A stretch of 64,000 bases of DNA from Tubulanus polymorphus (GCF_964204645.1 NC_134030.1:1037355-1101354); one strand, 5' to 3'; counted from the stretch's first letter, positions 23,221 through 59,700 are shown. Notes: generated by a model not told the origin, from the sequence alone. Translations and numbers: made by a program.

Positions 23221-23289
23221 TTCACTGAACCAGAATAAGACCGACTGATATATTTTCAAATGATTTAATATTTTTACTTGTTTTTCTAG

Positions 23290-23352
23290 ATGCCAAAAGC
23301 CACAAAGAAAACCCGGGGCGCGGGGCCCTCAACATCTAGCCCCTATAATAAA
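23290..23352 (+). CDS. Exon 1: MPKATKKTRGAGPSTSSPYNK
   Basis: TTTTTCTAG|ATG ... AAA|GTAAGT, 63 nt. Confidence 0.88.
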
Positions 23353-26300
23353 GTAAGTACAAATTTACTGCTTCCATGCTTATTTATTCATACTTAGTAT
23401 TTTGTACCCCTGGGTCCAGTTTCACAAAAAGGATAAACGCCTTAATCGATTTAAGATAAACTGAATTAATGAAGAAATTAAATCGATTTAAGAGTTAAAC
23501 CTGTTTGTGAAACTAGGCCCTGAATTGCATCTAGAATGAAAAAAAAGAAAAAAAAATATTGAAAATAACGTTGGTGAAATATTTCTGGATCTTTCTGGAT
23601 TTCTGCTCAATGCATCGTTTAGTAAAATATCGATATTCTCTAAAAGTAAAGATATAAGAATAAAAATATTGTATTGAATCGTGATTAGTTACTGTATGCG
23701 CTGCTAGTTGTTGCCCAACCCATAGCCTCATTTCTCTCCATTCTAAATTTGCATTGTTTAACATTGTCTGGTCGCTATGGAAACTATTTATTTAAGTTTC
23801 TTTGTTGTATCCATGGCAACAGTAACGTTTAGGTAGTGGCACCAATTATGGGTCCCAACGTTCCCATGGCGATACATGAGAACATTTATCCTATTTTTGA
23901 CCTTCATGACGTAAGATGGTAGTGAGTCGATGACGTCATTTTCGTCTCACCACTAATGAAAAAAAAAATGAAATGAAAAAAAAGGAAAAAATCGTTAGAA
24001 TTACGTTTATGAAATTTTTCTGGATCGGCTAAATGTATTGTTCCATTAAATATCGACATTCTCTAAAATTATAGGCATCAATATCAAAATGATGATACAG
24101 CAGACTCCGCTTAACTCTGTTCTATTTGGACCATTAATTAACCGAATACCAACTTTTTAAAATTTTAGGATTTTAACTTTAAGGATCAGAAAATGTGTAT
24201 GCAATTTCAACCGGGTACCGAGTAGGGTGGCCGAGTCTACTGTAGTCTGCTGCCACCTCGAATCCATTACCTTATTATCTCTCAATTTGCATTGTTTGAC
24301 CTCGTCTGGTTGCTATGGAAACTATTTAGTTATATCAGGAACGGTTTTTTCGAGGTAACCAGTGGCAACATTTAACAGGCGTGTCCGTCCTAGAGATAAA
24401 CTGTCTGATTTCACAGCCACATCCGTCCTAGAGATAAACTGTTAGATAAACTCTGATTTCGCGTCTGTCCTATTTCTTGTCATTGTATGAATATGTTTTC
24501 TCTTTTATAGGGTACAGCGCAGCAACAACAACAACAACAACAACAACAGCAACAGCAACAACAACAACAAAAATTTAATATTTCTATGTCGGGAATAGAC
24601 GTAAGTTATCGTAAACGCCTGTTTGAAGTCATCATTCTTGAGCTTGAAACCGAAATTTATATTATAGAATATTAAACCCTGCTTCTGCTACTGACAGGTA
24701 ATGTCCGTCATACATTACTGCATCGTCAAATCTATACCAGGGTGCACCCAGGCAGATCGTTCGCATCATCACATGCAAAGGGCTGATTATTTTGGAACCC
24801 AGTTTTTATCAGCTGGAACATTCTGCACATTCGACCATATTGATTGATAGCCCGTTATAGACGAGTGGAGAAAAGCTGAAAAACCAGTTCGGAAAAACTT
24901 CGATTGATTTCACTCACATTTACAGAAATTTGGTCCGACCCCAAAACCATTTACTTACACTATACAAATCAGATCAGGTTTTTAACATTGTCCTTGATTG
25001 TATTTTCAGTTTTTGCCGACAACGCCACCGAGTGGTGTACCGCCTTCTACACCGGTAAGTGATAACTATTTTCTAATAAATCACGCTTATTTCAATCTGT
25101 AATTTGAAAATAGAGGGTAGTAGCTGTTATGTATAAATTATGCTAATTAGGAATAAATTCAAATTCGATTAAGTCTCATCATCGTAGAAGTCATATATTA
25201 ATGATGCTAAAGTTGTCATTTAAATTAAGTGTTATATTTACTACTTCATTTGCTTCATGACCCAAAAACCTCTACTATATAACTACTGGTTTTGTTCTAA
25301 TCTTGGAGAATTTGCTGCAAAATTTACTTATCATTTGTTAAACAGTTTTTATTGAAAACCTGAATCAGTGATACATGCATTCATGAATATCCATCTAATA
25401 TTTTGTTTTATTTTATCTTTACAGGATTTATCACCGATACAGCACGTGGACGTAAGAGATTAAACATTGATCTTGAATTTTAAGTTCAAACTAATTTATT
25501 TTTTATCTCACTCGGGACTATAGTTATTGCGTTCACTTTGCGTCCAGTTGTCTCGGCTAGTTTTTGATTTATCGTGTTGATAATTGGTTTATATACTCAA
25601 ACTCAAAATATCGGCGCAATTGGAATTAAGATGGCGCACTTGTATGTCCATTTTTTTCCCCGGCAAAATTAGCACTTTAGCAGATTTTAAGGATCAATTC
25701 TGTTGTTATATTACATTGAAATCAGAGTTTAATATATATCGGTATAGAGCAGGTTTTTGCTCTAGTTATAAATAAAGTTATAAATAATCTCATGACATGT
25801 TCTGTATATGTGTAGTGAGTTTCAATGTCTTTGGTTCCTTTTAAACCAGGGGGAGTTAAATTTGAAAATGTCAGATCGTCGAGCATTTCAGACCACTTCC
25901 AAAGTGGGTCCCTGCACCCCTAGTTATACCGTTAATATTTTAATAATATATTGATATACCATACATTGATATCAGTCTTGTAATTGGATCAACAACCATG
26001 AGATCAAAACACAGCAAATATGAACCTGCTGTGAATCAATAGATTTGTGATAAATGTAATGAAATTGTTATTTTTCATATTGACTTTTTGAGTTAAGGGT
26101 CTGTTGTATAAGAGTATTTGGTATCGCGTGTCAATGTATGATATCAATCTGTATTTCCTCGTTCCAATGTTTAAAAGGTGTTCGTCACCTTATATTAATA
26201 AACTACTTTTACCGTTAGATGGCGCCATAAGTGTGATATTTGATTTATGGGATACCCGCAAAACCAGCTATTCCACCAGATGGCGCAACGAGTAGTAGGT

Positions 26301-27571
26301 CGTTCGTTGTCAAAATTAGTTCATTTTCGATGAACTTTGAACTGGTTTGAAGAAGAAATACTTTCATTCTTCTACTCTGATATCGATTTAGTTTTCATTA
26401 ATAATTGATTCATTTAAGAGAACAATTCATTCAGATTTAATTGAAATGTACAAGAAAATCGAACGCAGACGACCAACTATTTACTAGCGACACCTGGTGG
26501 ATCCTCGCCTGCCATAAGTGGAATCCTCGATTGCCACAGTAAGACTGCGGGTATCCCATTGTTTGGCGTGTGAATTAAAGTAAAGTTAGAAAACGGATGT
26601 TTAACTTTGTTGTGAAACGAAAGCGTTTTGGAGATTTTTAAACCAATCAAATCAATATTTTGATATTACGCTTGAAACCCTTCCCACTCATATTCTACTT
26701 ACTAAGTATATATTCTTGTTTCCGTGGAAATCATGGTGAGTGGCGCCATCTATACAGTGGAGTTAGCTTTATAAATCGAGCATGATTCGACAAGTGGCTC
26801 CATCTATTCCCTAATACTGAAGCGAGGTAACCAGCAGCGCCCTCATATACAGGAAATGAACGCCTATCAAGTTTAACAATGCACGGTGTATTGACCACAG
26901 CGACCGGTGATAATTATATCAATGTTGATTAGCTATTGCCATAGACAGGTCCGTAGCGTTTGACTGGACCAGAACGGGGCCCCCTAACCAAAACAAATTT
27001 TGAAAACGTGCCCAGATAAATTGCCTCTGGGAGATTGATTTAACGAGGTTTTGATTAAATGAACAAATTTTAATATTTGTAAGTTTAACATTTCTGTTTT
27101 TAATTTTTCTTTGCGAGGAACTGAATTTTCGAACCCCCCCGAACCGCCTCAAGCTACGTTCCTGATATAGTGCTAGCTATACCTGAATACTTTTCTCTTA
27201 TTGAAATTGTCTAAAAAACCAGCACCTTGAACTAATGAACGTCATAATGAAAATGTTTAAAAATTCAACCATTAATGAATTTGACTAATGTATTTTTTTT
27301 ATTTTCATTTCTAGCATCAGTTTGCCTCAGAGGCAAGGTCGCCGTCGCTTAATGTAAGTATCAGTGACGCCCTCAATCTCACATGCCTCACTTCCCTCCT
27401 AATGTAACCATTTTTATGAAATTCCTCAAGAAAATATATACTAGTAATCTTAGAATACACGTTTTTGTACCCAGACCCCTTCATTCTACTGAACTACCGT
27501 GTAATAAGTGCCTGTTGTGTTCATTTTCTGTTGCATTGATTTATATATTATTTCTATTTACAGTTGTCAAA

Positions 27572-27612
<41 letters not shown>

Positions 27613-30600
27613 CACCCCTCCCGCCGGAGACGCCTCCCGACTTGCAAGCAAGAAGTAAGTTCAGTCTTCAAATACAATTTCAATGCATTCAATTTTGTGT
27701 ATGGCATTAAAACGGTTAAAGTTGTGACTAGTTTTCATAACTCCGTGACGTCATATTTCCATCGAGTACCGGACCCTTTCCTATGTTTTTTGCCAATTTG
27801 GATTGAATGATCGCCAGCGGTTTTTCTATACGACCCGGCTCTGCTGTATTGCATTTAGCCATCCTTTTTCTTGGCGTTTTTTATAAGAAGGTGTTTGATT
27901 TTGTCTCTAAGGGATTTAGGAATTTAAGAGACACTTGTACTTTCTATGCAGTGAGTTTGTTCTGTTTTTGTTCCCTCGTGAATTTTATTTTTGTTTGGTT
28001 TAATTTGATTTATCATAATCAAATCAAATCAGTGCATATTTCTTGAATTGCGTGTAAGTTATAATGTTATCAAATATCTGTTATATTTAAACCGAATATT
28101 TAATTGTTGTATTTTGAATGCGATAATGCCGCTCCCTGCTAAAGTCCAGCGTCATCATCGTGAGGGATGCGGTCATCTGTTCGGGCCCTGATTACGTTCT
28201 GTGTTCATCCTGTTGGGCTACATCGGGCGTTATATGAGTTCATCCTTCCTCGACTTGCGGATTGTGGTCGGAAGATCTATGGGTTCGGGCCGATAAGTCC
28301 CGGAAACAGAAAGTACAGTTTCTGCCGATGTGCCTATTGATGTCTCTATTTCAGAACATCACAGCGGTCGCCGGCTGTACAAGCACGGTCGGCTTCCCAA
28401 CTCCATTCTCTGAGGAGGATCGCTGGTTCTCTAGTAACGGTCAGTCACCAGTCAATCAACGGTTCAGCTGGTTCAGTTTCCCAGGTATCGGCGCGCGACA
28501 GTCGGGATACCTGCACAGGAACTCAGGTCCGGTCCGGGCTACTCCGAGCACCGGTCCGGTCCAGGCATCACCGGATACTGAACATCCTGTCCGGTAGCTT
28601 CGAGAACTGGTCCGGTCCAGGCATCACAGGGTACTGAACATCTGGTCTAGTCAGCTTCGAGAACCGGTCCAGGCATCACCGGATACTGAACATCTGGTCC
28701 GGTCAGCTTCGAGAACTGGTCCGGTCCAGGCATCACCGGGTAATAAACATCCGGTGCACGGGTACTGAACATCTGGTCCGGGAGCTTCGAGAGTCCGGTC
28801 CGGTCCAGGCATCACTGGGTACTGAACATCCAGTCTGGTCCAGTCCAGGCATCACCGGGTACTGAACATCCAGTCCGGTCTGGTCCAGGCATCACCGGAT
28901 ACTGAACATCTGGTCCGGTAGCTTCGACAACTGGTCCGGTCCAGGCATCACCGGGTACTGAACATCCAGTCCGGTCCGGTCTAGGCATCACCGGGTACTG
29001 AACATCCAGTCTGGTCCGGTCCAGGCATCAGTGGATACTGAACATCTGGTCCGGTAGCTTCGAGAACTGGTCCGGTCCAGGCATCACTGGGTACTGAACA
29101 TCCAGTCCGGTCCGGTCCAGGCATCACTGGGTACTGAACATCCAATCCGGTCCGGTCCAGGCATCACCGGGTACTGAACATCCAGTCTGGTCCGGTCCAG
29201 GCATCAGTGGATACTGAACATCCTGTCCGGTCAGCTCCGTGCACCGGTCCGGTCCAGGCATCACTGGGTACTGAACATCCAGTCTGGTCCAGTCCAGGCA
29301 TCACCGGGTACTGAACAGGGTTCGTCGCGGTGCTTGAAAAGCTTGAAATGGCTTGAATTTGAAAAATACTACTCAAGCGCTTGAAAACAGCTTGAAAATA
29401 GATCGAAAGCTTGAAATAATTATTTTTGACTTGAAATAAAAAGATATGGCTTGAAATGCTTGATTATCACAAATTTTCTTCATCGCGAATTTTTTTCGAT
29501 GAAATCGCAGACAGAATATGTTCTTGAGTTGTTTCTACGCGTGCGTCATGTTTTAGGCATCAATAAAGAAATTAATTGAATTGTATTGAATCGCTATGAG
29601 ACTCTTGTGGTGAAACTCTACGGTGTCTGGAGACATGAACATACGGGGAAATTTCAGTCATGCATGTTATCGAGCATTGATGTAAAATGGCATTGAAATC
29701 CCACACCAGGAGTGAGAGCCATGTTGAAGGCACCGCGACCTAGTCAAAGTCATTGAACATTACAAATTTCGTATTAGGCCATCCAAAAATCAAGGTCTGT
29801 TTGCCGTCATCCGACCGACCCGACTTCAAAGGTACCCAGTGGAAACTTTTTTCTTGGATTCATTGAAATAAATTGTATTTTTGATACAAATGGCCGACCC
29901 ACTGCCGATGTATGAGCTATGTATGTTTGAAGTTAAGTGTGCATCATGTGAAAACATGCCTCGACTATTTAGTTGAAGTTTTCCAGGAAACTGGCAGTGT
30001 TCCAATAAGCTGCCATTCATTCTAAAGCTGGTAATGTTATAGCGTGCATATATTCAATCTACTGTTTCATTTTGAACGCAGATTTCGGATGTTGTTTCCG
30101 CTAAAAGTGGTGATGATAAATTTGTTGTTTTTTTGCCCCAAAATTTTGCAAAAAAAAAATGATGCTACCTTCCTACTGACTTATCCCAAAAATAGTAGGT
30201 GTAACGGCAAAACAGACAATTAATTTGGGATGGCCAAATATCCAAATCTTGATTGATATGAATATTTAAGCTAGGAAATGCTGAAAATCATTGTGATGAA
30301 CAGGTTTCATCTCTAACAGAATCGTATCAACTCGGAGGTTCCACTGGAATCAAAATTTTACCTCTTTTTTAACATTTTTATACGAACCTGTTCAAAATAG
30401 GCAAATTGGCTGCGACTAACGAAAATTGCTTCCAACGTGCCATAAAAAATAGCTTGAAAATGGTATAAATCTAGCTTGAAATGGATTGAATTTCACCTGA
30501 GCTTGAGACAATGAACCCTGCTGAACATCTGGTCCGGTCAGCTTCCAGCACTGGTCCGGTCCAGGCATCACCGGTTACTGAACATCCGGTCCGGTCAGCT

Positions 30601-33600: not shown

Positions 33601-36600
33601 CATAGGAAAGGGTCAAGCACTACTCCGAAAAAAAACTAATTTTATTTCCAAAAAATTATGATATTATATGGATTGCATGCTGTGTGGAAGAAGTTTTCAA
33701 AATTATTTAGGAGCTTATTATAATTTGAATGCATGAATTGAGAGCAATTTGAAATGTGTTGATATCCGAAAGTGTCTCCATTGACTTCACTCATTCACCT
33801 GATGAAGCTTCTATACATTAGTACCCAAAGCTTGTGTGTCAAATAAACTAGTTACACGTCCTATAAAGTACTACTTGTCTCGTTATATATTCTAAACCCC
33901 AGTTAACAATTCCAGTAAGTCAGGTTTAGGGAATAGATATTTAAACCTTGAGATGATACCGATGTAATACAATTCCAGTAAGTCAGGTTTAGGGAATAGA
34001 TATCTAAACCTTGAGATGATACCGATGTGATACAATTCCAGTAAGTCAGGTTTAGGGAATAGATATTTAAACCTTGAGATGATACCGATGTGATACAATT
34101 CCAGTAAGTCAAGTTTAGGGAATAGATATTTAAACCTTGAGATGAAACCGATGTGATACAATTCCAGTAAGTCAGGTTTAGGGAATAGATATTTAAACCT
34201 TGAGATGATACCGATGTGATACAATTCCAGTAAGTCAGGTTTAGGGAATAGATATTTAAACCTTGAGATGATACCGATGTGATACAATTCCAGTAAGTCA
34301 GGTTTAGGGAATAGATATTTAAACCTTGAGATGATACCGATGTGATACAATTCCAGTAAGTCAGGTTTAGGGAATAGATATTTAAACCTTGAGATGATAC
34401 CGATGTGATACAATTCCAGTAAGTCAGGTTTAGGGAATAGATATTTAAACCTTGAGATGATACCGATGTGATACAATTCCAGTAAGTCAGGTTTAGGGAA
34501 TAGATATTTAAACCTTGAGATGATACCGATGTGATACAATTCCAGTAAGTCAGGTTTAGGGAATAGATATTTAAACCTTGAGATGATACCGATGTAATAC
34601 AATTCCAGTAAGTCAGGTTTAGGGAATAGATATTTAAACCTTGAGATGAAACCGATGTGATACAATTCCAGTAAGTCAGGTTTAGGGAATAGATATTTAA
34701 ACCTTGAGATGATACCGATGTGATACAATTCCAGTAAGTCAGGTTTAGGGAATAGATATTTAAACCTTGAGATGATACCGATGTAATACAATTCCAGTAA
34801 GTCAGGTTTAGGGAATAGATATTTAAACCTTCAGATGATACCGATGTGATACAATCCCAGTAAGTCAGGTTTAGGGAATAGATATTTAAACCTTCAGATG
34901 ATACCGATGTAATACGATTCCAGTAAGTCAGGTTTAGGGAATAGATATTTAAACCTTGAGATGAAACCGATGTGATACAATTCCAGTAAGTCAGGTTTAG
35001 GGAATAGATATTTAAACCTTCAGATGATACCGATGTGATACAATTCCAGTAAGTCAGGTTTAGGGAATAGATATTTAAACCTTCAGATGAAACCGATGTG
35101 ATACAATTCCAGTAAGTCAAGTTTAGGGAATAGATATTTAAACCTTCAGATGAAACCGATGTGATACAATCCCAGTAAGTCAGGTTTAGGGAATAGATAT
35201 TTAAACCTTGAGATGAAACCGATGTAATACAATTCCAGTAAGTCAGGTTTAGGGAATAGATATTTAAACCTTGAGATGAAACCGATGTGATACAATTCCA
35301 GTAAGTCAGGTTTAGGGAATAGATATTTAAACCTTCAGATGATACCGATGTAATACAATTCCAGTAAGTCAGGTTTAGGGAATAGATATTTAAACCTTGA
35401 GATGAAACCGATGTGATACAATCCCAGTAAGTCTGGTTTAGGGAATAGATATTTAAACCTTTAGATGATACCGATGTGATACAATTCCAGTAAGTCAGGT
35501 TTAGGGAATAGATATTTAAACCTTGAGATGATACCGATGTAATATAATTCCAGTAAGTCAGGTTTAGGGAATAGATATTTAAACCTTGAGATGAAACCGA
35601 TGTGATACAATCCCAGTAAGTCAGGTTTAGGGAATAGATATTTAAACCTCGAGATGAAACCGATGTGATACAATTCCAGTAAGTCAGGTTTAGGGAATAG
35701 ATATTTAAACCTTCAGATGATACCGATGTTATACAATTCCAGTAAGTCAGGTTTAGGGAATAGATATTTAAACCTTTAGATGAAACCGATGTGATACAAT
35801 TCCAGTAAGTCAGGTTTAGGGAATAGATATTTAAACCTTGAGATGAAACCGATGTGATACAATTCCAGTAAGTCAGGTTTAGGGAATAGATATTTAAACC
35901 TTTAGATGAAACCGATGTGATACAATTCCAGTAAGTCAGGTTTAGGGAATAGATATTTAAACCTTTAGATGAAACCGATGTGATACAATTCCAGTAAGTC
36001 AGGTTTAGGGAATAGATATTTAAACCTTTAGATGATACCGATGTGATACAATTCCAGTAAGTCAGGTTTAGGGAATAGATATTTAAACCTTGAGATGATA
36101 CCGATGTAATATAATTCCAGTAAGTCAGGTTTAGGGAATAGATATTTAAACCTTCAGATGAAACCGATGTAATACAATTCCAGTAAGTCAGGTTTAGGGA
36201 ATAGATATTTAAACCTTCAGATGATACCGATGAATTTAGCAATTTTGAATGAATCAAACCAATATGAGATTTCGATCCTAAGAATATTGGAAGCTTGTGT
36301 TTAACGTTACTAAATATTAATATTATATAAAGCTAGAAGGACACGAGCGTATCCATTTTTCGCCCGATCGCGACGATTAAATTCGCCGGTGAATTTATAC
36401 GCCCGATACGAGCGGGTACCGATCTATCTATAAATCGGCCGTCACGGTGATTTCGTCGCCCGCCGACATTAAACATGTTCGATATTTATGCCGGTGTTCG
36501 GGTCACTTGTTAATTCGCTCGGCTTGTCGGCAAGCTTAAAAAGATTTAGAAAAAACTAGAAATTCTCATTCGTGAATGAACTGGATTCATCTGGGTTCAG

Positions 36601-44477: not shown

Positions 44478-46660
44478 AATTGTTCATACAACTGTCAACA
44501 TGGAGTTCATCTCACAAGCAAATTAGGTAATTATCTTATGAAATTGTATGAATTGCCAATTTAACATTTTTGCATTTCAAGTAGGTGTAATTGAATGTTT
44601 GTCAACCTTACTCTTATAAAACTGTGTTAACCGTTGAACAGGATTCTAAGACTGTGCAGAAAACCCGTTATCGCTGCTTTGCAGCTATAATTATCTGATA
44701 AATTAGTATGGAATGCCAATTTTACATTTTTGCATTTAAGTTTAAGTGAGTTTAAAATCACGTTTCATTTGTTGTTTATTTTGTCTTTTCAGTTTTCAAT
44801 TTGCCGAGATCAGTCGTCAAAAACTGTTACAACGGAAACTAAGATAACAAAGACTTGATTTGGCAAAGATTGAAGAAATCCTGCGAAAAGATTATTCATG
44901 AATTGTTCATACAACTGTCAACATGGAGTTCATCTCACAAGCAAATTAGGTAATTATCTTATGATTTTGTATGAAATGCTAATTTTTACTCGTTAATTTT
45001 TTACAAATAAGTTGACTTTGAAATCTTTATTAATTTCTTGTTTATTTTGTTTTTTCAGTTTTCAATTTGCCGAGATCAGTCATCAAAAACTGTTACAACG
45101 GAAACTAAGATAACAAAGACTTGATTTGGCAAAGATTGAAGAAATCCTGCGAAAAGCTTATTCAAGAATTGTTCATACAACTGTCAACATGGAGTTCATC
45201 TCACAAGCAAATTAGGTAGTTATCTTATGATTTTGTATGAAATGCTAATTTTTACTCGTTAATTTTTTACAAATAAGTTGACTTTGAAATCTTTATTAAT
45301 TTCTTGTTTATTTTGTTTTTTCAGTTTTCAATTTGCCGAGATCAGTCATAAAAAAACTGTTACAACGGAAACTAAGATAACAAAGACTTGATTTGGCAAA
45401 GATTGAAGAAATCCTGCGAAGAGATTATTCAAGAATTGTTCATACAACTGTCAACATGGAGTTCATCTCACAAACAAATTAGGTAATTATCTTATGGTTT
45501 TGTATGAAATGCTAATTTTACATTTTTGCATTTAAGTTTAAATGAGTTTAAAATCACGTTTCATTTGCTGTTTATTTTGTCTTTTCAGTTTTCAATTTGC
45601 CGAGATCAATCGTCAGAAAACTGTTTCAACGGAAACTAAGATAACAAAGACTTGATTTGGCAAAGATTGAAGAAATCCTGCGAAGAGATTATTCATGAAT
45701 CATATAACTGTCAACATGGAGTTCATCTCACGAGCAAATTAGGTAATTATCTTATGATTTGTATGAAATGCTAATTTTTACATTTAAGTTTAAATGAGTT
45801 TAAAATCACGTTTCATTTGTTGTTTATTTTGTCTTTTCAGTTTTCAATTTGCCGAGATCAGTCGTCAGAAAACTGTTACAATGGAAACTAAGATAACAAA
45901 GACTTGATTTGGCAAAGATTGAAGAAATCCTGCGAAGAGATTATTCAAGAATTGTTCATACAACTGTCAACATGGAGTTCATCTCACAAGCAAATTAGGT
46001 AGTTATCTTATGATTTTGTATGAAATGCTAATTTTTACTCGTTAATTTTTTACGAATAAGTTGACTTTGAAATCTTTATTAATTTCTTGTTTATTTTGTT
46101 TTTTCAGTTTTCAATTTGCCGAGATCAGTCATAAAAAAACTGTTACAACGGAAACTAAGATAACAAAGACTTGATTTGGCAAAGATTGAAGAAATCCTGC
46201 GAAGAGATTATTCAAGAATTGTTCATACTACTGTCAACATGGAGTTCATCTCACAAACAAATTAGGTAATTATCTTATGGTTTTGTATGAAATGCTAATT
46301 TTACATTTTTGCATTTAAGTTTAAATGAGTTTAAAATCACGTTTCATTTGCTGTTTATTTTGTCTTTTCAGTTTTCAATTTGCCGAGATCAGTCGTCAGA
46401 AAACTGTTACAATGGAAACTAAGATAACAAAGACTTGATTTCGGCAAAGATTGAAGAAATCCTGAGAAGAGATTATTCATGAATTGTTCATACAACTGTC
46501 AACATGGAGTTCATCTCACAAGCAAATTAGGTAATTATCTTATGATTTTGTATGAAATGCTAAATTTTACTCGTTATTTTTTTACTAATAAGTTGACTTT
46601 GAAATCTTTATTTATTTCTTGTTTATTTTGTCTTTTCAGTTTTGAATTTGCCGAGATTCA
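44478..46660 (+). ncRNA. ~265-bp tandem array of exon-intron cassettes; candidate spliced lncRNA
   Basis: Seven ~154-159-nt segments (44793-44949, 45059-45215, 45325-45482, 45589-45742, 45841-45998, 46108-46265, 46372-46530), each bounded by a pyrimidine tract plus CAG and by TAG|GTA(A/G)TT. The unit I translated has stops in all three frames. The repeat is certain; transcription is inferred. Confidence 0.55.
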
Positions 46661-46759
46661 CATGTAGCAGATATAATGGAATTAAGTATTGAGAACCGCA
46701 ACTTAACAATAAACCGGATCAACTTAATATAGTGCTGAGGACCAAAAATAAAGGATAAA

Positions 46760-47355: not shown

Positions 47356-47524
47356 TAATCTGGAGTTGTAATAGTGTTGTGTATTTGCGTAGTGGATCAA
47401 GTGGAAGGATTTTAAGTGTATTTGGTGACTTTAATTCGTTCGCATCCAACAGAATCAACAAAGACATTACAAAAAACGACAAAAAATGATTGAATGTAAA
47501 TGCATTGAATTTAGGTTTGATGAT

Positions 47525-48939: not shown

Positions 48940-49001
48940 TTTTGATACGGGCTAGACGTTGAGGGGCCCGCCCCGGGTTTTCTTTAAAGCTTTTGGCATT
49001 A
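48940..49001 (-). pseudogene. Frameshifted exon-1 copy (MPKALKKTRG...)
   Basis: TTTCTAG|ATA ATG CCA AAA GCT TTA AAG AAA ACC CGG, followed by a 2-nt deletion. Confidence 0.8.
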
Positions 49002-49071
49002 TCTAGAAAAACAAGTAAAAATATTAAATCATTTGAAAATATATCAGTCAGTCTTATTCTGGTTCAGTGAA

Positions 49072-49916
49072 CTAATTCTCTATATGGTGCATGTAGGGGT
49101 CCGGGAACACAACATCCACTAATTCTCTATATGGTGCATGTAGGGGTCCAGGGACACGACATCCACTAATTCTCTATATGGTGCATGTAGGGGTCCAGGG
49201 ACACCACATCCACTAATTCTCTATATGGTGCATGTAGGGGTCCAGGGACACGACATCCACTAATTCTCTATATGGTGCATGTAGGGGTCCGGGAACACAA
49301 CATCCACTAATTCTCTATATGGTGCATGTAGGGGTCCAGGGACACCACATCCACTAATTCTCTATATGGTGCATGTAGGGGTCCGGGAACACAACATCCA
49401 CTAATTCTCTATATGGTGCATGTAGGGGTCCGGGGACACCACATCCACTAATTCTCTATATGGTGCATGTAGGGGTCCAGGGACACCACATCCACTAATT
49501 CTCTATATGGTGCATGTAGGGGTCCGGGAACACAACATCCACTAATTCTCTATATGGTGCATGTAGGGGTCCGGGAACACCACATCCACTAATTCTCTAT
49601 ATGGTGCATGTAGGGGTCCGGGAACACAACATCCACTAATTCTCTATATGGTGCATGTAGGGGTCCAGGGACACGACATCCACTAATTCTCTATATGGTG
49701 CATGTAGGGGTCCAGGGACACCACATCCACTAATTCTCTATATGGTGCATGTAGGGCTCCAGGGACACCACATCCACTAATTCTCTATATGGTGCATGTA
49801 GGGGTCCAGGGACACCACATCCACTAATTCTCTATATGGTGCATGTAGGGGTCCAGGGACACAACATCCACTAATTCTCTATATGATGCATGTAGGGGTC
49901 CAGGGACACCACATCC
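49072..49916 (+). repeat. 47-bp satellite, ~18 copies, with array-specific variants (CCGGGAACACAAC)
   Basis: Same unit as 4292-5186. Confidence 0.97.
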
Positions 49917-50708: not shown

Positions 50709-51050
50709 TCAAAACAAATCCGGAATTGTCCCCGAACGAAGTGGCTCCCTCCACTCTCCATCAGTATGCCGGGCCACCACCTCTACCTCTCGGGCCACTC
50801 GATCACTCGCCAGCTTTTTGACGAGTGACCACCCAAGATACGGATGGAGGAGCAGGAGGAGCAGGACCCGCACCATCTCCAGCCCCACCACCATCCCTCC
50901 TCGGCCGCTTCCTATTTATCCCCTCCCCCACCCGATTACCTTCGTCAGCCGCACCATCCGCCGGGACCACTCTTGCTCCTCCTCCCTGCGGAGCCACGAC
51001 GACCGCAACTGGTACTTTTCGGTTTCTCATGGTTTCCCCACCATCTTTCA
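50709..51050 (-). pseudogene. Chimeric exon-8 paralogue (fusion of the two copies at 14957-15304 and 15633-16030)
   Basis: The left part matches 14957-15070 and the right part matches 15790-16030. Confidence 0.85.
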
Positions 51051-54000
51051 AAAGAGAACTATCGATATATCATTAGCTACAAGGAAACTTTTCAGAAACT
51101 TTTTCAGGTCATTCTTTCTTGTATTATTAGCATTTGATTCTCTATATATCGTCAGAACATGGACTCAGAGTGTTTCTTTAATGGTTAAGAATGTCTCTTT
51201 AACCAACATCCCCCTAGCCTGCTTCCTACATATCCCTTCCCTTTCCTCCTGATTACCTTTGATCCCCACTGCCTAGCAGCTAACAGCTGCTGCTATTTTA
51301 TCAGTCTCAATTAGTATTCAGTTTACTTCAGATAACGTAATTTGGTTTAATCACAAGTCGTCAACATTATAATCAATGTAACTACAGTGACTACATTATT
51401 GTCCTTTTATTGAGAAATTTATGTTAATTTTTTATTTCTGGGATAAATCAAAATTCAAATGTTATCATTTTTTGTATCAAAAATTGTAAAAAATTGAATA
51501 ATTTGTGTGCTATTGAAACATTCAGTTATGGGGAGTTTTTAGCTCAGAAAACTTTGAGCCTGTTTATACAAGTGTTGTAACAAGTGTTGAACAATTCAAA
51601 GATCATGTTTATTATACTTTGTCATGCAAGAAAGAAAAAATGTTTTCTAGTATATTGATGTTTCTAAAAAAACATATGATTCAACTTCAAACGGCCAACA
51701 AGCCTTCTAATAAAACTAGTTTGTCATATATATATATTACTTGGTCATTGTCAAGTTTTTTTAAAAATATTTTGGTTTTTTCAGCTTTCTCTGGTGGAAA
51801 TTTCTTCGTGGAATTCTTCTTCTATACAAGTTCCTCCTCAGACTGTTTTAATGCGAGAGTTTATAACAACCGGATCCTCAGAAAATGGTCGGAGTGCCAA
51901 GTCTTCGATTTAAGATCACCAGTCTTATCTGAGACCATAAGTTCACTAGCAAGTTTCACTAGCGATTCCAACAGCTATAGGATGGAACAGTATTATTATA
52001 TATGTCACCACTGTGCAATTGAGCCCAGATCATCAGAAAAAGATAAAAGTGAAGATATGTGATGGGATTCATTGAAAATTTTGCATATATAATTAATTCA
52101 TTGAACTACTTAATTTGTATGATTTATTTTTTGGGAATTTTCGAATTTGTCATCAATAACTAGTATATATTTCTTTTCAAGTTGTGAGCGATCTAGTTCT
52201 CTGTTGACCCATTGAAAATGAATCGACTCTGAACTGTAGAACTGGACCCAGGGAGCTGAATCTCGCGTGCCACAGCAAGATACAGAGCTCTTCAATGTCT
52301 TAACCGTCAGGTGCTGCCCCTAAACAAATCAATAGCGGTAAATCTGTGAACTAACTTATAGCTCGCTTGCCAGAGTAGAATCATAGCGAGCTGTCTAAAA
52401 TCTTGAACCGTCTAGTGCTGCCCCTTAATCGATATGTATCGGAAAAGTGAATTTATTACTCGCATGCCACAGTAGTTGAGTAGTTGGAACATCATGATAG
52501 ACTCGTTTTTCTGTGCAGCTATAACGGGAACTATTTCAGATCTGATAATGAATATAAACTCAGTCACAGTTCGATAACAAACGCCGCTGGGTGAAATTGA
52601 TGTAAACAAATAATCGTGTTGAAATTGAATTTAGTTTAAGACATATTTTCGTGGTAGTTTTTATTTTCAAGCTGTTTACGTTCACTTCAAATGATGAAAC
52701 GATGAAACCATATTAAATACATCCCTGTTTTAGTGGGGATTTTGAGTTTTGGTCCTTTCCGTATCTTCTAGAAACATCAAGTAGAAAGGCATTAACTGAA
52801 CCCTATGTCTTTAACTTCAGGAGTCTATATGGAGTTTTCGGATGCCTCTTTTCCTCACTTCTTGCATTCGTCACTATTAGAAATCTGGACAAACTGAATT
52901 CAGTTCGACGAGGCCGAAGAACAGAAGACCAAAGAGTGATCTGCACTAGCCGCAGGGTTCGTGTTGGCCTGGACCGGTGGGAGGCAATCAAACCCCGACA
53001 CGTGAAGATGTATCCTCAAAAATGGATACCGGAACGCTTCTCTGGTTTACGATGATTAGTCTGCTGGGATAACTCTTTGGCGGGGCGTGATCGCGTGAAT
53101 AGCCCAAACTAAACCTTCAGAGTTCACTGTACTACAGCATACAACATCTGATAACTTGCATAATAAAGCGCGGCGTGCATGAAAAGATTTGTATAAATGC
53201 GGGCAAGATTCCGTGCCCTGGCAATCGAACGCCGGAGTGGAGGTATTCCATACACTGGTAGGTGAGTCGGAGTAGACTGGTTGCTTGTCCCATAGAGACC
53301 GGTAACCAGTCTAGCCACCTCACGATCAGTCTACATTGAAAAACCATTACTGAAATATGGTTGACGGAAATATTCATTTTATATCAGATTCTAAAATATT
53401 TTCTCGTATTGAATACAAAATTTTTATTATCTTAATAAGATAAATCTGCCAAAGCTCAACAATTTAAATTAGTGAAAACCGATGTGCGAAGTCGTCAATT
53501 CAGTAGCCCGATAGAGCCCGGTAACCAGTCTAACTGACAATGTTCATTGCGCGGGAATGAACGGGCAACTAGTCTACGATGAAAAATCATTTCTGAAAAA
53601 TTATGAACGGAGATATTCATTTTACTTTGAATTTTGAATTATCTTATAAAACTGACAGCCATATTAACCAAAGTATTAATAGTAAATCTGATAAAATCTA
53701 ATACTGGTTTAAGAATAGGTGAAAACTGATTTATGTGAAGCCGTCGGTTCAGAAGACTGATCCGTAGAATCGTTCGCCACTTTCTTCCGGTCCACTTACT
53801 TCCGCGTTTGTGATTTGCATACAAGTAGTTTGAATGTTAAATGTATTAAGCCGCGTGTTGATTGGTTGAGGTCAGTGCGGTTTACTGAACGATGACCAGC
53901 TGTCAGCTGATCGAATCATTCGTTTCACAGACATTACGACGTAAGTATATTTTACATCTTTGATCAAAAATTGTAGTGTAAAAAAACTCAAAACTAAGGC

Positions 54001-54563
54001 CTCTATAAATGATCGATTGACTTTAAATGATTACTTTAGCACAGCTCTTGTAGACAATGATTAGGTGTCATAGTAGTTTAGCTCGAAAGTGCACATATAA
54101 GGTTAATTTTCATCCCTTATTTAGAGACCGAGGTATTGAGCGTCCATTTCAGCCCTTAAAACATCATCAACCTACCTCAAACTGACTGTTTTTAAATCCA
54201 GCAATAGTTGACTATTGACTCATCATGGATTCGATTCAAAAACAATTTTTGATGATCATAGTGATTCGAAACGTTTGAATTTTTGAAAAACACGAATGCT
54301 AAACGACAGATCCGGACTTCGATTGCGGCCCAATGGCAGAGTTGATTTTCTTATTTGGAATTTGAAGATATAAATCACTGAAATCAATTGGTTTTCTGAA
54401 CCAAAATTAAAATTAAGAAGTATTTAGGATGGAGATGTTTGATTTTCATTTTGTCTAAAATGCCGACTTAAAAATTAATTCAATTGAATCAAATTAATGA
54501 ATTCATCATTTCACGATATTAGGCCTATAGATAATCAAAGTGTGAATATGAAATCACCTTTTC

Positions 54564-55650
54564 AATCGCTGTTTTTGGGTAAGATCGCAGTTTTTAGGTA
54601 AGATCGCAGTTTTTAGGTTAGATCGCTGTTTTGAGGTTAGATCACCGTTTTGTGTTAGATTGCGGTTTTGTGTTAGATCACTTTTTTGTGTTAGATCGCT
54701 GTTTTGTTTTAGATCGCTGTTTTAGGTTAGATCGCAGTTTTTAGGTTACATTGCAGTATTTGGGTTAGACCGCAGTTTTTTGTTAGATCGCAGTTTTTAA
54801 GTTAGATCGCTGTTTTGGGTTAGATCACAGTTTTTGTGTTAGATCGCTGTTTTAGGTTAGATCGCAGTTTTTGTGTTAGATTGCATTTTTGTGTTAGATC
54901 ACTGGTTTTTTGTTAGATCGCAGTTTTTAGGTTAGATGGCAGTTTTTAAGTTAGATGGCTGTTTTGTATTAGATCGCTGTTTTTAGGTTAGATTGCTGTT
55001 TTTAGGTTAGATCGCTGTTTTGTGTTAGATCGCTGTTTTTAGGTTAGATCACAGTTTTTGTGTTAGATCACAGCTTTTAGGTTAGATTGCTGTTTTTAGG
55101 TTAGATGGCTGTTTTTAGGTTAGATCCCTTTTTTTCTTAGATCGCAGTATTTAGGTTAGATCGCTTTTTTTGGATTAGATCGCAGTTTTTGGGTTAGATC
55201 GCAGTTATTGTGTTAGATCGCTGTTTTTGGGTTAGATCGCTGTTTTTGGGTTAGACGGCAGTGTTTAGGTTAGATTGCAGTTTTTAGGTTAGAACAATGT
55301 TTTTCTGTTAGATCGCAGTTTTTTTGTTAGATCGCAGTTTTTAGGTTAGATCGCAATTTTTTGTGTAAGATCGCAGTTTTTTGTTAGGTCGCTGTTTTTG
55401 GGTTAGAAAGCTGTTTTTGTGTTAGATTTGTGTTTTTAGGTTAGATCGCTATTTTTGTGTTAGATCGCTGTTTTTGGGTTAGATGGCTGTTTTTGGGTTA
55501 GATGGCTGTTTTTGGGTTTGATCGCTGTTTTTGGGTTAGATCGCTGTTTTTGGGTTAGATCGCTGTTTTTAGGTTAGATCGCTGTTTTTGGGTTAGATCG
55601 CTCTTTTTGGGTTAGATCGCTCTTTTTGGGTTAGATCACTGTTTTTGTGT
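54564..55650 (+). repeat. 19-21-bp minisatellite, copy B (~1.1 kb)
   Basis: Same unit as 20533-22495. Confidence 0.95.
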
Positions 55651-55700
55651 TTTTGTCAATCATCATATCAAGATTTGCAATCCCAGTTGCCTTCAAGTTT

Positions 55701-56656
55701 CATATAGAGAATTAGTGGATGTGGTGTCCCTGGACCCCTACATGCATCATATAGAGAATTAGTGGATGTGGTGTCCCTGGACCCCTACATGCACCATATA
55801 GAGAATTAGTGGATGTGGTGTCCCTGGACCCCTACATGCACCATATAGAGAATTAGTGGATGTGGTGTCCCTGGACCCCTACATGCACCATATAGAGAAT
55901 TAGTGGATGTGGTGTCCCTGGACCCCTACATGCACCATATAGAGAATTAGTGGATGTGGTGTCCCTGGACCCCTACATGCACCATATAGAGAATTAGTGG
56001 ATGTGGTGTCCCTGGACCCCTACATGCACCATATAGAGAATTAGTGGATGTGGTGTCCCTGGACCCCTACATGCACCATATAGAGAATTAGTGGATGTGG
56101 TGTCCCTGGACCCCTACATGCACCATATAGAGAATTAGTGGATGTGGTGTCCCTGGACCCCTACATGCACCATATAGAGAATAAGTGGATGTGGTGTCCC
56201 TGGACCCCTACATGCACCATATAGAGAATTAGTGGATGTTGTGTCCCTGGACCCCTACATGCACCATATAGAGAATTAGTGGATGTGGTGTCCCTGGACC
56301 CCTACATGCACCATATAGAGAATTAGTGGATGTGGTGTCCCTGGACCCCTACATGTACCATATAGAGAATTAGTGGATGTGGTGTCCCTGGACCCCTACA
56401 TGCACTATATAGAGAATTAGTGGATGTGGTGTCCCTGGACCCCTACATGCACCATATAGAGAATAAGTGGATGTGGTGTCCCTGGACCCCTACATGCACC
56501 ATATAGAGAATTAGTGGATGTGGTGTCCCTGGACCCTTACATGCACCATATAAAGAATTAGTGGATGTGGTGTCCCTGGACCCCTACATGCACCATATAG
56601 AGAATTAGTGGATGTGGTGTCCCTGGACCCCTACATGCACCATATAAAGAATTAGT
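55701..56656 (-). repeat. 47-bp satellite, ~20 copies
   Basis: Same unit, ending ~70 bp upstream of exon 1 of copy B. Confidence 0.97.
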
Positions 56657-56727
56657 TCACTGAACCAGAATAAGACTGACTGATATATTTTCAAATGATT
56701 TAATATTTTTACTTGTTTTTCTAGAAG

Positions 56728-59700
56728 ATGCCTAAAGCAACAAAAAAAACACGGGGCGCGGGCCCCTCACATTCAAGCCCGTATAATAAAGTAAGTACAA
56801 ATTTACTGCTTCCATGCTTATTTATTCATCCCATACTTAGTATTTTGTACCCCTGGGTCCAGTTTCACAAAAAGGATTAACGCCTAAATCGATTTAAGAT
56901 AAACTGAATTAATGAAGAAATTAAATCGATTTAAGAGTTAAACCTGTTTGTGAAACTAGGCCCTGAATTGCATCTAGAATAAAAAAAAAGAAAAAAAAAA
57001 TATTGAAAATAATGTTGGTGAAATATTTCTGGATCTCTCTGGATTTCTGCTCAATGCATCGTTTAGTAAAATATCGATATTCTCTAAAAGTAAAGATATA
57101 AGAATAAAAATATTGTATTGAATCGTGATTAGTTACTGTATGCACTGCTAGTTGTTGCCCAACCCATAGCCTCATTTCTCTCCATTCTAAATTTGCATTG
57201 TTTAACATTGTCTGGTCGCTATGGAAACTATTTATTTAAGTTTCTTTGTGGTATCCATGGCAACAGTAACGTTTAGGTAGTGTGACCAATTATGGGTCCC
57301 AACGTTCCCATGGCGATACATGAGAACATTTATCCTATTTTTGACCTACATGACGTAAGATGGTAGTGAGTCGATGACGTCATTTTCGTCTCACCACTAA
57401 TGAAAAAAAAAATTAAATGAAAAAAAAGGAAGAAATCGTTAGAATTACGTTTATGAAATTTTTCTGGATCGGCTAAATGTATTTTTCCATTAAATATCGA
57501 CATTCTCTAAAATTATAGGCATCAATATCAAAATGATGATACAGCAGACTCCGCTTAACTCTGTTCTATTTGGACCATTAATTAACCGAATACCAACTTT
57601 TTAAAATTTTAGGATTTTTACTTTAAGGATCAGAAAATGTGTATGCAATATCAACCGGGTACCGAGTAGGGTGGCCGAGTCTACTGTAGTCTGCTGCCCC
57701 CTCGAATCCATTACCTTATTATCTCTCAATTTGCATTGTTTGACCTCGTCTGGTTGCTATGGAAACTATTTAGTTATATCAGGAACGGTTTTTTCGAGGT
57801 AACCAGTGGCAACATTTAACAGGCGTGTCCGTCCTAGAGATAAACTGTCTGATTTCACAGCCACATCCGTCCTGGAGATAAACTGTTAGATAAACTCTGA
57901 TTTCGCGTCTGTCCTATTTCTTGTCATTGTATGAATATGTTTTCTCTTTTATAGGGTACAGCGCAGCAACAACAACAGCAACAACAACAACAACAACAAC
58001 AACAGCAACAGCAACAACAACAACAAAAATTTGATATTTCTATGTCCGGAATAGACGTAAGTTATCGTAAACGCCTGTTTGAAGTCATCATTCTTGAGCT
58101 TGAAACCGAAATTTATATTATAGAATATTAAACCCTGCTTCTGCTACTGACAGGTAATGTCCGTCATACATTACTGCATCGTCAAATCTATACCAGGGTG
58201 CACCCAGGCAGATCGTTCGCATCATCACATGCAAAGGGCTGATTATTTTGGAACCCAGTTTTTATCAGCTGGAACATTCTGCACATTCGACCATATTGAT
58301 TGATAGCCCGTTATAGACGAGTGGAGAAAAACTGAAAAACCAGTTCGGAAAAACTTCGATTGATTTCACTCACATTTACAGAAATTTGGTCCGACCCCAA
58401 AACCATTTACTTACACTATACAAATCAGATCAGGTTTTTAACATTGTCTTTGATTGTATTTTCAGTTTTTACCCACAACGCCGCCCAGTGGTGTTTCGAC
58501 GCCGGTAAGTGATAACTATTTTCTAATAAATCACGCTTATTTCAATTTGTAATTTGAAAATAGAGGGTAGTAGCTGTTATGTATAAATTATGCTAATTAG
58601 GAATAAATTCAAATTCGATTAAGTCTCATCATCGTAGAAGTCATATATTAATGATGCTATCTCTAAAGTTGTCATTTAAATTAAGTGTTATATTTACTAC
58701 TTCATTTGCTTCATGACCCAAAAACCTCTACTATATAACTACTGGTTTTGTTCTAATCTTGGAGAATTTGCTGCAAAATTTACTTATCATTTGTTAAACA
58801 GTTTTTATTGAAAACCTGAATCAGTGATACATGCATTCATGAATATCCATCTAATATTTTGTTTTATTTTATCTTTACAGGATTTATCACCGATACAGCA
58901 CGTGGACGTAAGAGATTAAACATTGATCTTGAATTTTAAGTTCAAACTAATTTATTTTTTATCTCACTCGGGACTATAGTTATTGCGTTCACTTTGCGTC
59001 CAGTTGTCTCGGGTAGTTTTTGATTTATCGTGTTGATAATTGGTTTATATACTCAAACTCAAAATATCGGCGCAATTGGAATTAAGATGGCGCACTTGTA
59101 TGTCCATTTTTTTCCCCGGCAAAATTAGCACTTTAGCAGATTTTAAGGATCAATTCTGTTGTTATATTACATTGAAATCAGAGTTTAATATATATCGGTA
59201 TAGAGCAGATTTTTGCTCTAGTTATAAATAAAGTTATAAATAATCTCATGACATGTTCTGTATATGTGTAGTGAGTTTCAATGTCTTTGGTTCCTTTTAA
59301 ACCAGGGGGAGTTAAATTTGAAAATGTCAGATCGTCGAGCATTTCAGACCGCATCCAAAGTGGGTCCCTGCACCCCTAGTTATACCGTTAATATTTTAAT
59401 AATACATTAATATTTTTATTTGATAGAATATATTGATATACCATACATTGATATCGGTCTTGTAATTGGATCAACAACCATGAGATCAAAACACAGCAAA
59501 TATGAACCTGCTGTGAATCAATAGATTTGTGAAAAATGTAATGAAATTGTTATTTTTCATATTGACTTTTTGAGTTAAGGGTCTGTTGTATAAGAGTCTT
59601 TGGTCTCGCGTGTCAATGTATGATATCAATCTGTTGTATTTCCTCGTTCCAATGTTTAAAAGGTGTTCGTCACCTTATATTAATAAACTACTTTAACCAT

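Follow-up and report, generated by a model that had tools for sequence, protein, structure and literature searches.

Marked divergence between copies in three tiny N-terminal exons of a tandemly repeated Tubulanus polymorphus gene, set in near-identical DNA

In the ribbon worm Tubulanus polymorphus, three tiny N-terminal exons of a multi-copy gene are 15 to 50 times more divergent between copies than the DNA that surrounds them. The gene lies in a tandem array with repeats of about 34 kb, two of which, units A and B, are contained in the window analysed here, a stretch of 64,000 nt (NC_134030.1:1037355-1101354, GCF_964204645.1). We read the divergent stretches, hereafter islands, as peaks of divergence within a backbone under concerted evolution, as in the primate L/M opsin genes, an interpretation to which we give about an even chance of being right.

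Each unit of about 34 kb carries one copy of the gene, an orphan predicted to have eight small exons (Table 1), and the family comprises at least 26 copies, 17 on contig C6 and 9 on contig C3. The predicted protein is basic and NLS-like, with polyQ and polyS stretches and an N-terminus beginning MPKATKK, at which inspection revealed no signal peptide. The last coding exon matched no Pfam family and gave no hits among 1.84 billion representative proteins.

Table 1. Features of units A and B and of the antisense region, in positions of the window
Feature	Position	Strand	Remarks
Unit A backbone (satellites, upstream region, introns 1-4)	17253-30000	+	About 99% identical to unit B 51293-64000 outside tandem repeats
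Copy A exon 1	23290-23352	+	63 nt, MPKATKKTRGAGPSTSSPYNK; variable island; acceptor TTTTTCTAG, donor GTAAGT
Copy A exon 2, polyQ	24511-24600	+	Variable island is the last 30 nt only (24571-24600); first 12 nt invariant
Copy A exon 3	25010-25054	+	45 nt, FLPTTPPSGVPPSTP; variable island, four protein alleles at codons 10-12
Copy A exon 4	27564-27654	+	91 nt, poly-Ser frame; internal control, varies only in CAG-repeat length
Copy A exon 7	38536-38765	+	230 nt; almost no variation among C6 genes
Copy A last coding exon	39900-40292	+	130 aa plus stop; basic NLS-like runs
Copy B exon 1	56728-56790	+	
Copy B exon 2	57955-58056	+	102 nt
Copy B exon 3	58466-58504	+	39 nt
Copy B exon 4	61049-61130	+	82 nt; the sole differences from copy A are an indel of the CAG repeat and one substitution within the repeat
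Antisense compact partial copies	3582-12700	-	2.7-kb unit, three times over
Exon-1 cassettes	4047-4290, 7490-7733, 10170-10413	-	
Fused exon 1+2 cassettes without intron 1	3853-4061, 7287-7499, 9964-10179, 12373-12630	-	
Exon-3 cassettes	6283-6483, 6597-6707, 8960-9160, 9274-9384, 11624-11804	-	
Exon-7 cassettes	5347-5729, 8038-8406, 10718-11086	-	
Older exon-1-like mini-exon arrays	610-3413 (610-1134, 2694-3413)	-	Flanks also diverged, 71-84% identity
Further set of exon-1-like mini-exons	13862-14283		

Extent and limits of the exon contrast

Between copies A and B, exon 1 differs by seven synonymous third-position changes and one ACA/CAT replacement (T/H), and exon 3 (45 vs 39 nt) by seven synonymous changes and an in-frame 6-nt indel, exactly the counts given in an earlier note on this DNA. 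The adjacent introns, which the note had called almost identical, are so: intron 2 (24601-25009) differs at 2 of its 409 sites. Pairwise pS is 0.49 in exon 1 and 0.58 in exon 3, and the two exons together differ at 16 of 102 sites, compared with 48 of 5026 in the introns and upstream flank (Fisher p = 4e-14). The comparison of dS with intron divergence across aligned copies that the note had proposed yielded, among the 17 C6 copies, a mean exon dS of 0.41-0.42 against an intron distance of 0.0086, a difference of about 48-fold, with segregating sites at 33 of 141 nt in the islands and 177 of 5047 nt in the introns (p = 3e-17). In exon 1, dN (0.066) likewise exceeds the intron distance, about eightfold, for a dN/dS of 0.16; in exon 3, dS is 0.42 and dN 0.005, giving a dN/dS of 0.01.

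Across the 26 copies, 23 of the 63 sites of exon 1 are variable, 9 of them with at least three alleles and 14 at third codon positions, and the 28 nt flanking the exon on each side are identical across about 30 haplotypes. In exons 1, 3 and 7 the island borders fall within a few nucleotides of AG and GT, as does the border at the 3' end of exon 2. In copies other than A, three additional nucleotides between the AG acceptor and the ATG are variable, non-coding yet hypervariable like the exon itself. No comparable island was found across about 5 kb of intron. Changes in exon 1 comprise 19 transversions and 10 transitions with no CpG or single-base signature, bearing out the view that CpG decay does not suffice to explain them, and the third-position bias, the dN/dS of 0.01-0.16 and the in-frame indels indicate slow divergence under protein constraint.

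The effect is not general to exons, for exon 4 (4 of 91 sites segregating, pi at about the intron level) and the first 12 nt of exon 2 vary as little as the introns. The statement that exons differ far more than introns thus holds for exons 1 and 3 and for the last 30 nt of exon 2, but not for these two stretches.

Since the region is a satellite-rich, multi-copy tandem array, the differences could in principle have been introduced by assembly or polishing of a collapsed repeat. Raw Illumina reads of run X5, which derives from a different study and a different sample than the assembly, carry the variants at substantial frequencies, both in exon 1 (23325 G>C in 51 of 192 reads, 23334 A>T in 43 of 194, 23343 C>G in 54 of 191) and in exon 3 (25027 A>G in 111 of 127, 25033 T>C in 115 of 128), at a depth that fits a family of at least 15 copies. 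Besides, the differences keep the reading frame and the same haplotypes recur in many copies. The exon differences therefore have independent read support, and the probability that they are an artefact is negligible.

Exchange of old exon haplotypes between copies

Near-identical units differ in exon 1 at either 0-1 or 10-12 sites. The pairs A/L043, L031/L044 and L036/L039 are separated by an intron distance of 0.2-0.5% and 0-1 exon differences, whereas L039/L040 and B/L039, with an intron distance of 0.3-0.4%, have 11-12 differences in exon 1 (for L039 and L040, 12 sites at 0.27% in introns). This all-or-nothing behaviour argues that old haplotypes were exchanged as blocks and did not arise by steady hypermutation.

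Hypermutation targeted to exons, with replacement changes purged by purifying selection, would account for the excess of both exon dS and exon-1 dN over the intron distance and for the three to four alleles carried by four-fold sites; in the five closest unit pairs, summed, exon changes are also about twice as frequent as intron changes (6/705 vs 94/24530). However, a 48-fold rate would lead one to expect about 10% exon divergence in units that are 0.2-0.5% apart in introns and have 0-1 exon differences, and a burst of about ten random changes, almost all of them silent, is implausible. With alleles shared by both arrays, a mutation spectrum without a CpG or single-base signature and exon 4 spared, we consider hypermutation very improbable.

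Genealogies of exons and introns are decoupled. On the intron-1 tree, the C3 array forms one clade (support 100/98), and the array label changes once, a value that 0 of 1000 shuffles reach; the alleles at codon 15 require 9 changes on the same tree and those at codon 11 require 8, and neither count improves on shuffled labels. The intron tree has a star-like shape, and intron 1 requires a minimum of 15 recombination events (Rmin), exon 1 a minimum of 6 and exon 3 one of 4. Additionally, 12 of the 63 sites of exon 1 are polymorphic in both arrays, compared with 7 of 1180 in intron 1. These data support the conclusion that the exon blocks are of greater age than the surrounding sequence and have moved between copies by recombination or conversion. 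The earlier note had suggested exon-limited conversion from older paralogues, and the movement of older blocks is borne out by L039 and L040; the limitation to exons is not supported by the same pair, in which the swapped tract spans at least 1.3 kb (23242-24585).

Antisense cassettes and the source of the variants

Antisense cassettes of exons 1, 2 (3' part), 3, 7 and 8 span 1196-16000 and recur along the array. In every cassette of exon 1, fused exon 1+2, exon 3 and exon 7 listed in Table 1, a variable exon is set in a constant flank. Exon 7 of the gene is 83-91% identical to that of the antisense cassettes, with flanks at 95-98%, and 96% identical to that of four C3 genes, with flanks at 100%. 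Meanwhile, the paralogues on contig C8 present the normal pattern, with flanks 77-89% and exons 86-96% identical. In four antisense cassettes exon 1 is joined in frame to exon 2, intron 1 being absent at a codon-exact junction, and the flanks of these fused cassettes are identical to those of the gene. One cassette shows a Ser codon-family switch from TCA to AGT, a further sign of slow divergence under protein constraint. Some cassettes are frameshifted, and the cassettes are probably non-functional.

These sequences, together with the mini-exon arrays and the C8 copies, are the putative donors in a model in which recently amplified units take exons from older paralogues by ectopic gene conversion at the DNA level, homology being confined to the exons. 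The occurrence of older exon-1-like mini-exons with diverged flanks within the 64-kb window, the normal pattern of the C8 paralogues and the clear exchange of exon haplotypes as blocks are all consistent with such import, and by our own estimate the event rate needed lies within the usual range of ectopic conversion. Nevertheless, the characteristic last two codons and flank variants of the mini-exons never appear in exon 1 of the gene, and the alleles are common to both arrays. The older donor presumed by the earlier note was not found for the diverged exon-7 type, which lacks a closer relative beyond the cassettes (identity to C8 copies is only 78-83%). Moreover, the flank-identical candidate donors have the same unexplained contrast, which only pushes the origin of the diversity back one step. 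Taken together, we regard exon-limited import as unlikely.

Spliced RNA or cDNA could instead template the exchange or protection of exons, with tracts that would stop at splice junctions. The position of the island borders near AG and GT, the hypervariable non-coding nucleotides ahead of the ATG and the four cassettes from which intron 1 was precisely lost, with flanks as in the gene, are features that this process would leave. Against it, exon 4 and the start of exon 2 are spared, exon 7 hardly varies among C6 genes, and variable sites are concentrated towards the 5' end, opposite to what cDNA priming would produce; introns are kept in 26 of 26 genes, and the window holds no ORF of at least 150 aa outside satellites, hence no local reverse transcriptase. 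The sparing of coding stretches, the retention of introns and the lack of a reverse-transcriptase ORF in the window also speak against the general mRNA- or cDNA-level process raised in the earlier note. Exchange alone, besides, neither creates nor maintains diversity, and we find a templating role of this kind highly doubtful.

A different role for the antisense cassettes would be that of a source of siRNAs or piRNAs, selection recoding the neighbouring mRNA to escape them, in a conflict of the Stellate/Su(Ste) or Dox/Nmy type. As in those loci, antisense copies homologous to exons of the amplified gene are present here, those of exons 1, 2 (3' part), 3 and 7 lying head-to-head with the genes and recurring along the array. 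The segments that vary in the genes are those found in the cassettes, whereas the 2.7-kb units lack exon 4 and the start of exon 2, and the changes are mostly silent and extend to non-coding exon bases. Yet exon 7, although present in the cassettes, is almost invariant among C6 genes, the signature is one of long, slow accumulation and block swapping instead of recent directional change, and the same contrast occurs within the cassettes themselves. Purely silent recoding, as the earlier note envisaged, does not describe the islands either, as each contains a multi-allelic amino-acid site. Small-RNA escape is, in our judgement, rather unlikely.

Hot codons and peaks of divergence

At the centre of each island lies a codon with several alleles. 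In exon 1, codon 5 occurs as 9 codons encoding 7 amino acids and codon 15 has the two states ACA and CAT noted above; in exon 3, codon 10 is GTT, GTA, TCT or ACC (V/S/T) and adjoins a PP indel; in exon 2, an N/D dimorphism divides the copies 13:13, with synonymous variants around it. Strong linkage to the hot codon is restricted to the span from -20 to +10 nt in exon 1 and to about +/-13 nt in exon 3, and is nil in introns. Silent sites at the periphery, for example TTG/TTA in exon 3, 23 nt from the hot codon, are weakly linked to it yet remain at intermediate frequency, which speaks against the interpretation favoured below. No island is present in coding stretches that lack amino-acid polymorphism, namely exon 4 and the first 12 nt of exon 2. 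The islands, their signature of age, the swapping of blocks, the decoupling from the intron genealogy and the short range of linkage are established.

The explanation that fits best was missing from the earlier note: introns are homogenised by gene conversion and selection preserves the exon variants, which we hold to be as probable as its negation. Unequal crossing-over and gene conversion between units would keep the non-coding backbone about 99% identical, with the compact antisense partial copies also taking part as conversion partners. This homogenisation would bypass exons 1 and 3 and the terminal 30 nt of exon 2, and in some copies exon 7. Old haplotypes with several alleles would persist in these stretches, and silent differences up to about 20 nt from a hot codon would be sheltered along with it. 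Judging from the pattern, selection for diverse N-terminal variants, acting on the hot codons, may stop the erasure of the islands, and dense mismatches that block short conversion tracts may be of additional help. The islands appear to end at exon borders because the exons are only 45-66 nt long and the splice signals are constrained.

Selection explains less easily that cassettes which are probably non-functional also have a diverged exon in a near-identical flank. Islands confined to exons, with borders a few nucleotides from the splice sites in three exons, would also be predicted by a process delimited by spliced RNA and acting genome-wide in this worm, which would account for the cassettes precisely lacking the intron as well. 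Mature transcripts might template exon repair, shielding exons from the conversion that renews introns or exchanging them between paralogues; alternatively, small RNAs from the antisense cassettes might draw the genes into an arms race that drives silent recoding of the mRNA. We assign this process, in either form, a small probability.

Homogenisation with preserved exon variants has its closest precedent in the primate L/M opsins, in which exons are more diverged than introns, trees built from introns cluster by species and most conversion tracts are intronic (PMC3213168). Selection keeps exons 3-5 distinct there, with peaks centred on the selected amino-acid sites (PMC3213168; PMC3924837), and the “peak of divergence” model is described in a review citing Teshima and Innan 2008 (PMC3924837). 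The gene family described here resembles the opsins in that exon divergence, synonymous sites included, exceeds that of introns, exon alleles are older and intron trees follow the locus or array. Unlike the two to three opsin genes, it comprises at least 26 copies in two arrays, and its multi-allelic islands, only 30-66 nt wide, take up entire micro-exons. At silent sites the contrast reaches about 48-fold, far above that in the opsins, and it extends to cassettes that are apparently dead.

The peptide-binding exons of MHC genes combine balancing selection with intron homogenisation by recombination, so that old mosaic alleles common across lineages are flanked by young introns. Old, multi-allelic mosaic exon variants beside young introns are likewise seen here, but between tandem paralogues, with a dN/dS of 0.01-0.16 and only one or two hot codons per exon, whereas MHC variation is allelic at few loci and consists mainly of replacement changes, with dN > dS at binding sites. 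Chicken Ig pseudo-V genes and Borrelia vlsE, the latter with silent cassettes in opposite orientation, diversify a single expression site somatically or clonally. Such systems share with this locus variable segments between invariant flanks, oppositely oriented partial cassettes beside intact genes and mosaic variants; here, by contrast, the diversity is germline and spread over many intact copies, with no direction of transfer shown. Venom genes with accelerated exon evolution (snake PLA2 and three-finger toxins, ASSET; conotoxins, with conserved introns) have introns much more conserved than their coding exons (PMC2711939; PMC3862624). The present family is also multi-copy with introns far more conserved than exons, but venom genes encode secreted peptides that change mainly at the protein level, for which a dN/dS of about 1 or higher over the variable exon would be expected, whereas here the changes are mostly silent (0.16 in exon 1, 0.01 in exon 3) and no signal peptide is seen on inspection.

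If the peaks-of-divergence reading is correct, this array would be an unusually clean and extreme natural example of concerted evolution and selection partitioning a gene, with a 34-kb unit held about 99% identical while windows of 30-60 nt at a few codons keep ancient multi-allelic variation. The linkage range of about 20 nt would then be a direct readout of the scale of conversion tracts. Finally, it would point to a protein family, orphan and probably nuclear, with diversifying pressure on its N-terminus, a feature that would suggest a role in conflict or recognition.

Gene units and their predicted product

Comparison of the window with itself showed that 17253-30000 and 51293-64000 form a tandem repeat, ~99% identical outside satellite arrays, and that both units carry small ORF pieces bearing canonical AG acceptors, polypyrimidine tracts and GTAAGT donors (gene copies A and B in the table). 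Exons 5 and 6 of an eight-exon model proposed earlier were sought in the window and not located; the phases of the exon 4 end (27654) and the exon 7 start (38536) match, making direct in-frame splicing possible. Genome-wide, at least 26 full plus-strand copies are present, 17 on contig C6, which holds the window at 1037355-1101354, and nine on contig C3, accompanied by numerous partial copies in minus orientation. Spacing on C6 is mostly 31-38 kb, with several gaps of ~57-68 kb (e.g., 1194220-1251951, 1290361-1349498, 1449288-1506598, 1573025-1640545 and 1672407-1735092). Along this array, a block of antisense cassettes appears at intervals of two to four gene units, coinciding with the double-spaced gaps, and similar inverted clusters lie at 652-686 kb on C6 and at 536-552 kb and 651-671 kb on C3.

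Coordinates of gene exons, satellites and fused cassettes in the window
Feature	Positions	Strand
Copy A exon 1	23290-23352	
Copy A exon 2	24511-24600	
Copy A exon 3	25010-25054	
Copy A exon 4	27564-27654	
Copy A exon 7	38536-38765	
Copy A last coding exon	39900-40292	
Copy B exon 1	56728-56790	
Copy B exon 2	57955-58056	
Copy B exon 3	58466-58504	
Copy B exon 4	61049-61130	
47-nt satellite	22548-23221, 55701-56656, 4293-5186, 12631-13338, 49071-49916	
Fused exon 1+2 cassettes	12373-12630, 3853-4061, 7287-7499, 9964-10179	minus

Public runs yielded no spliced RNA and no spliced contig across the gene; run X7 had no match to the locus, and run X8 gave a single unspliced piece (24586-24879). The case for coding exons is therefore indirect, drawn from features of the sequence itself: splice signals, in-frame indels, third-position bias (14 of the 23 variable sites in exon 1) and a low dN/dS of 0.01-0.16 in the variable exons. 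In protein searches run exon by exon, Pfam held no family for exons 7 and 8, the two largest, and a search of 1.84 billion representative proteins found none related to the 130-aa last exon (exon 8), such that the predicted product is classed as an orphan. It combines a basic N-terminus, polyQ, polyS, S/T-P-rich stretches and K/R-rich runs, an amino-acid make-up that suggests a nuclear protein. One C6 copy, L037 (G000:C6:1383344-1393343), has lost 1 nt from exon 1 and is probably a pseudogene. The phase-0 exons 1-3 imply a poly-Ser frame for exon 4, and in copy L042 a TAG within the CAG repeat of that exon is silent in this frame, favoring it over the polyQ reading.

The units are rich in repeats. 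The 47-nt satellite (14-20 copies, 96-98% matches) accompanies each exon-1 copy of the genes and of the cassettes, ~68 nt upstream, and is immediately preceded in both gene units by a 19-nt satellite (20533-22498, 54565-55651). Three intron segments (23406-23581, 26222-26573 and 27806-27981) reach 4-20 times the family read depth in an independent DNA run and are high-copy elements; inverted, MITE-like ends occur at 23412-23520 and many loose read ends at 26483-26541. Large satellites lie within or beside the gene at 33906-36232, 44767-46657 and 28759-29317, their types being an intronic 63-nt unit repeated 37 times, a 267-nt unit repeated 7 times and a GC-rich repeat of 40-136-nt period; ORFs of at least 150 aa in the window occur only inside such repeats.

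Exon and intron divergence

The earlier note had claimed that exons are far more diverged than introns between copies, and its counts of differences between A and B proved exact on recount. Of 102 aligned sites in exons 1 and 3 combined, 16 differ, against 48 of 5026 in the introns and upstream flank (odds ratio 19, p = 4e-14); taken separately, exon 1 has a pairwise pS of 0.49 and exon 3 one of 0.58. An alignment of the 17 C6 copies over 5.3 kb, the set on which the exon 3 and exon 4 statistics are based, revealed a nucleotide diversity of ~0.01 throughout, with clean spikes of ~0.12 at exons 1 and 3 and a lesser one in the final 30 nt of exon 2. Exon dS averages 0.41-0.42 and intron distance 0.0086, and some 30 distinct exon-1 haplotypes are framed by identical 28-nt flanks on either side. 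The excess does not extend to exons in general: variation in exon 4 and in the first 12 nt of exon 2 is as low as in the introns, and exon 7, according to identity tables, hardly varies among C6 genes.

The contrast is genuine and highly significant, and it holds across the family. Raw Illumina reads of another sample, sequenced in a separate study, contain the exon variants at substantial frequency, at a depth consistent with at least 15 family copies; assembly error is rejected on these grounds, and an artefact is essentially excluded. One refutation foreseen in the earlier note, that reads might fail to bear out the exon differences, is thereby removed. CpG decay was likewise discarded, as the variability of intron CpG sites is just ~4-fold that of A/T sites, and most of the variable exon sites lie outside CpG, with 19 transversions and 10 transitions in exon 1.

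Exchange between units; antisense copies

Units only 0.2-0.5% apart in their introns show either 0-1 exon differences (A/L043, L031/L044, L036/L039) or 11-12 differences in exon 1 (L039/L040, B/L039). This all-or-nothing pattern rules out clock-like exon hypermutation, and a block of ~10 almost wholly silent changes could not arise from one random burst, indicating that the haplotypes are old and have been swapped between units; exon-targeted hypermutation as such is highly improbable. The intron tree of 17 copies is star-like, with exon haplotypes scattered across it. When all 26 copies are placed in a tree built from intron 1, the C3 array forms a single clade (support 100/98), and the array label needs one change, a value reached in 0 of 1000 shuffles, while the alleles at exon-1 codons 15 (T/H) and 11 (A/V/T) need 9 and 8 changes, no better than shuffled labels. 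Sites polymorphic in both arrays number 12 of 63 in exon 1 and 7 of 1180 in intron 1, and the exon variants are mosaic, exon 1 requiring at least 6 recombination events and exon 3 at least 4.

Swapping of old haplotypes agrees in part with the exon-limited conversion proposed in the earlier note, but the swap separating L039 from L040 reaches into the intron, with differences concentrated in 23242-24585 and rare downstream, and is not exon-limited. Import restricted to exons from older paralogues is unlikely. The old paralogues on contig C8 show the ordinary pattern, the exon being better conserved than its flank; as a source of the diverged exon-7 type they were rejected, their identity to it being merely 78-83%, and no closer relative of that type was found elsewhere.

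Compact partial copies occupy the minus strand of window positions 1-16000. A 2.7-kb unit, present three times, carries exon-1, exon-3 and exon-7 cassettes with shortened introns; nearby lie arrays of older exon-1-like mini-exons, whose flanks have diverged too. The cassettes reproduce the contrast seen in the genes: identity to the gene is 83-91% for the exon-7 cassettes and 95-98% for their 121-nt upstream flank. We consider it quite unlikely that small RNAs have driven the exons to be recoded against these antisense cassettes. In four fused cassettes, exon-1-like sequence is in frame with the polyQ exon 2, and intron 1, 1158 nt long in the genes, is missing at a codon-exact junction; the fused exon is strongly diverged from that of the genes through its last codon, but from the GT on, at the beginning of intron 2, the sequence is identical to the gene, as is the flank upstream. 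These cassettes could have lost the intron by way of a cDNA or could descend from an old lineage without it. Exchange templated by RNA or cDNA is very unlikely as the source of the islands.

Origin of the exon islands

Every island holds a codon encoding several amino acids: exon 1 has nine codons for seven amino acids at codon 5 and ACA/CAT at codon 15, the exon 2 island has N/D at a ratio of 13:13, and exon 3 has V/S/T at codon 10, adjoining a PP indel. Association with these hot codons is near-complete only close by, in exon 1 between about -20 and +10 nt and in exon 3 within about +/-13 nt, and is absent in introns. There is about an even chance that conversion homogenizes non-coding DNA among paralogues while selection keeps coding differences. 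Gene conversion would even out the non-coding DNA, selection would retain particular coding differences, and silent sites near the selected codons would be sheltered with them, here over ~20 nt on either side of a hot codon, producing a "peak of divergence". Because the exons measure 45-66 nt and splice signals are constrained, such islands would seem to end at exon borders with no need for an RNA intermediate. An RNA-delimited mechanism is improbable. The lack of amino-acid polymorphism in exon 4 and at the start of exon 2 would, under the same model, account for the absence of islands there.

Three features sit less easily with the peak model: seemingly non-functional cassettes display the same contrast, peripheral silent polymorphisms are only weakly linked to the hot codon, and 5 kb of intron contains no island at all. 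For these reasons, exon-limited import, small-RNA-driven recoding, RNA- or cDNA-templated exchange and targeted hypermutation are retained as rivals; both mechanisms originally put forward, exon-limited conversion and escape from silencing, find partial support only.

In gibbon L/M opsins, exon divergence likewise exceeds intron divergence, intron trees cluster by species and conversion tracts are mainly intronic (PMC3213168); the peak-of-divergence model and further cases have been reviewed (PMC3924837). Compared with these documented cases, the best-supported explanation for the Tubulanus polymorphus family is a very sharp, multi-copy and multi-allelic form of a known phenomenon.
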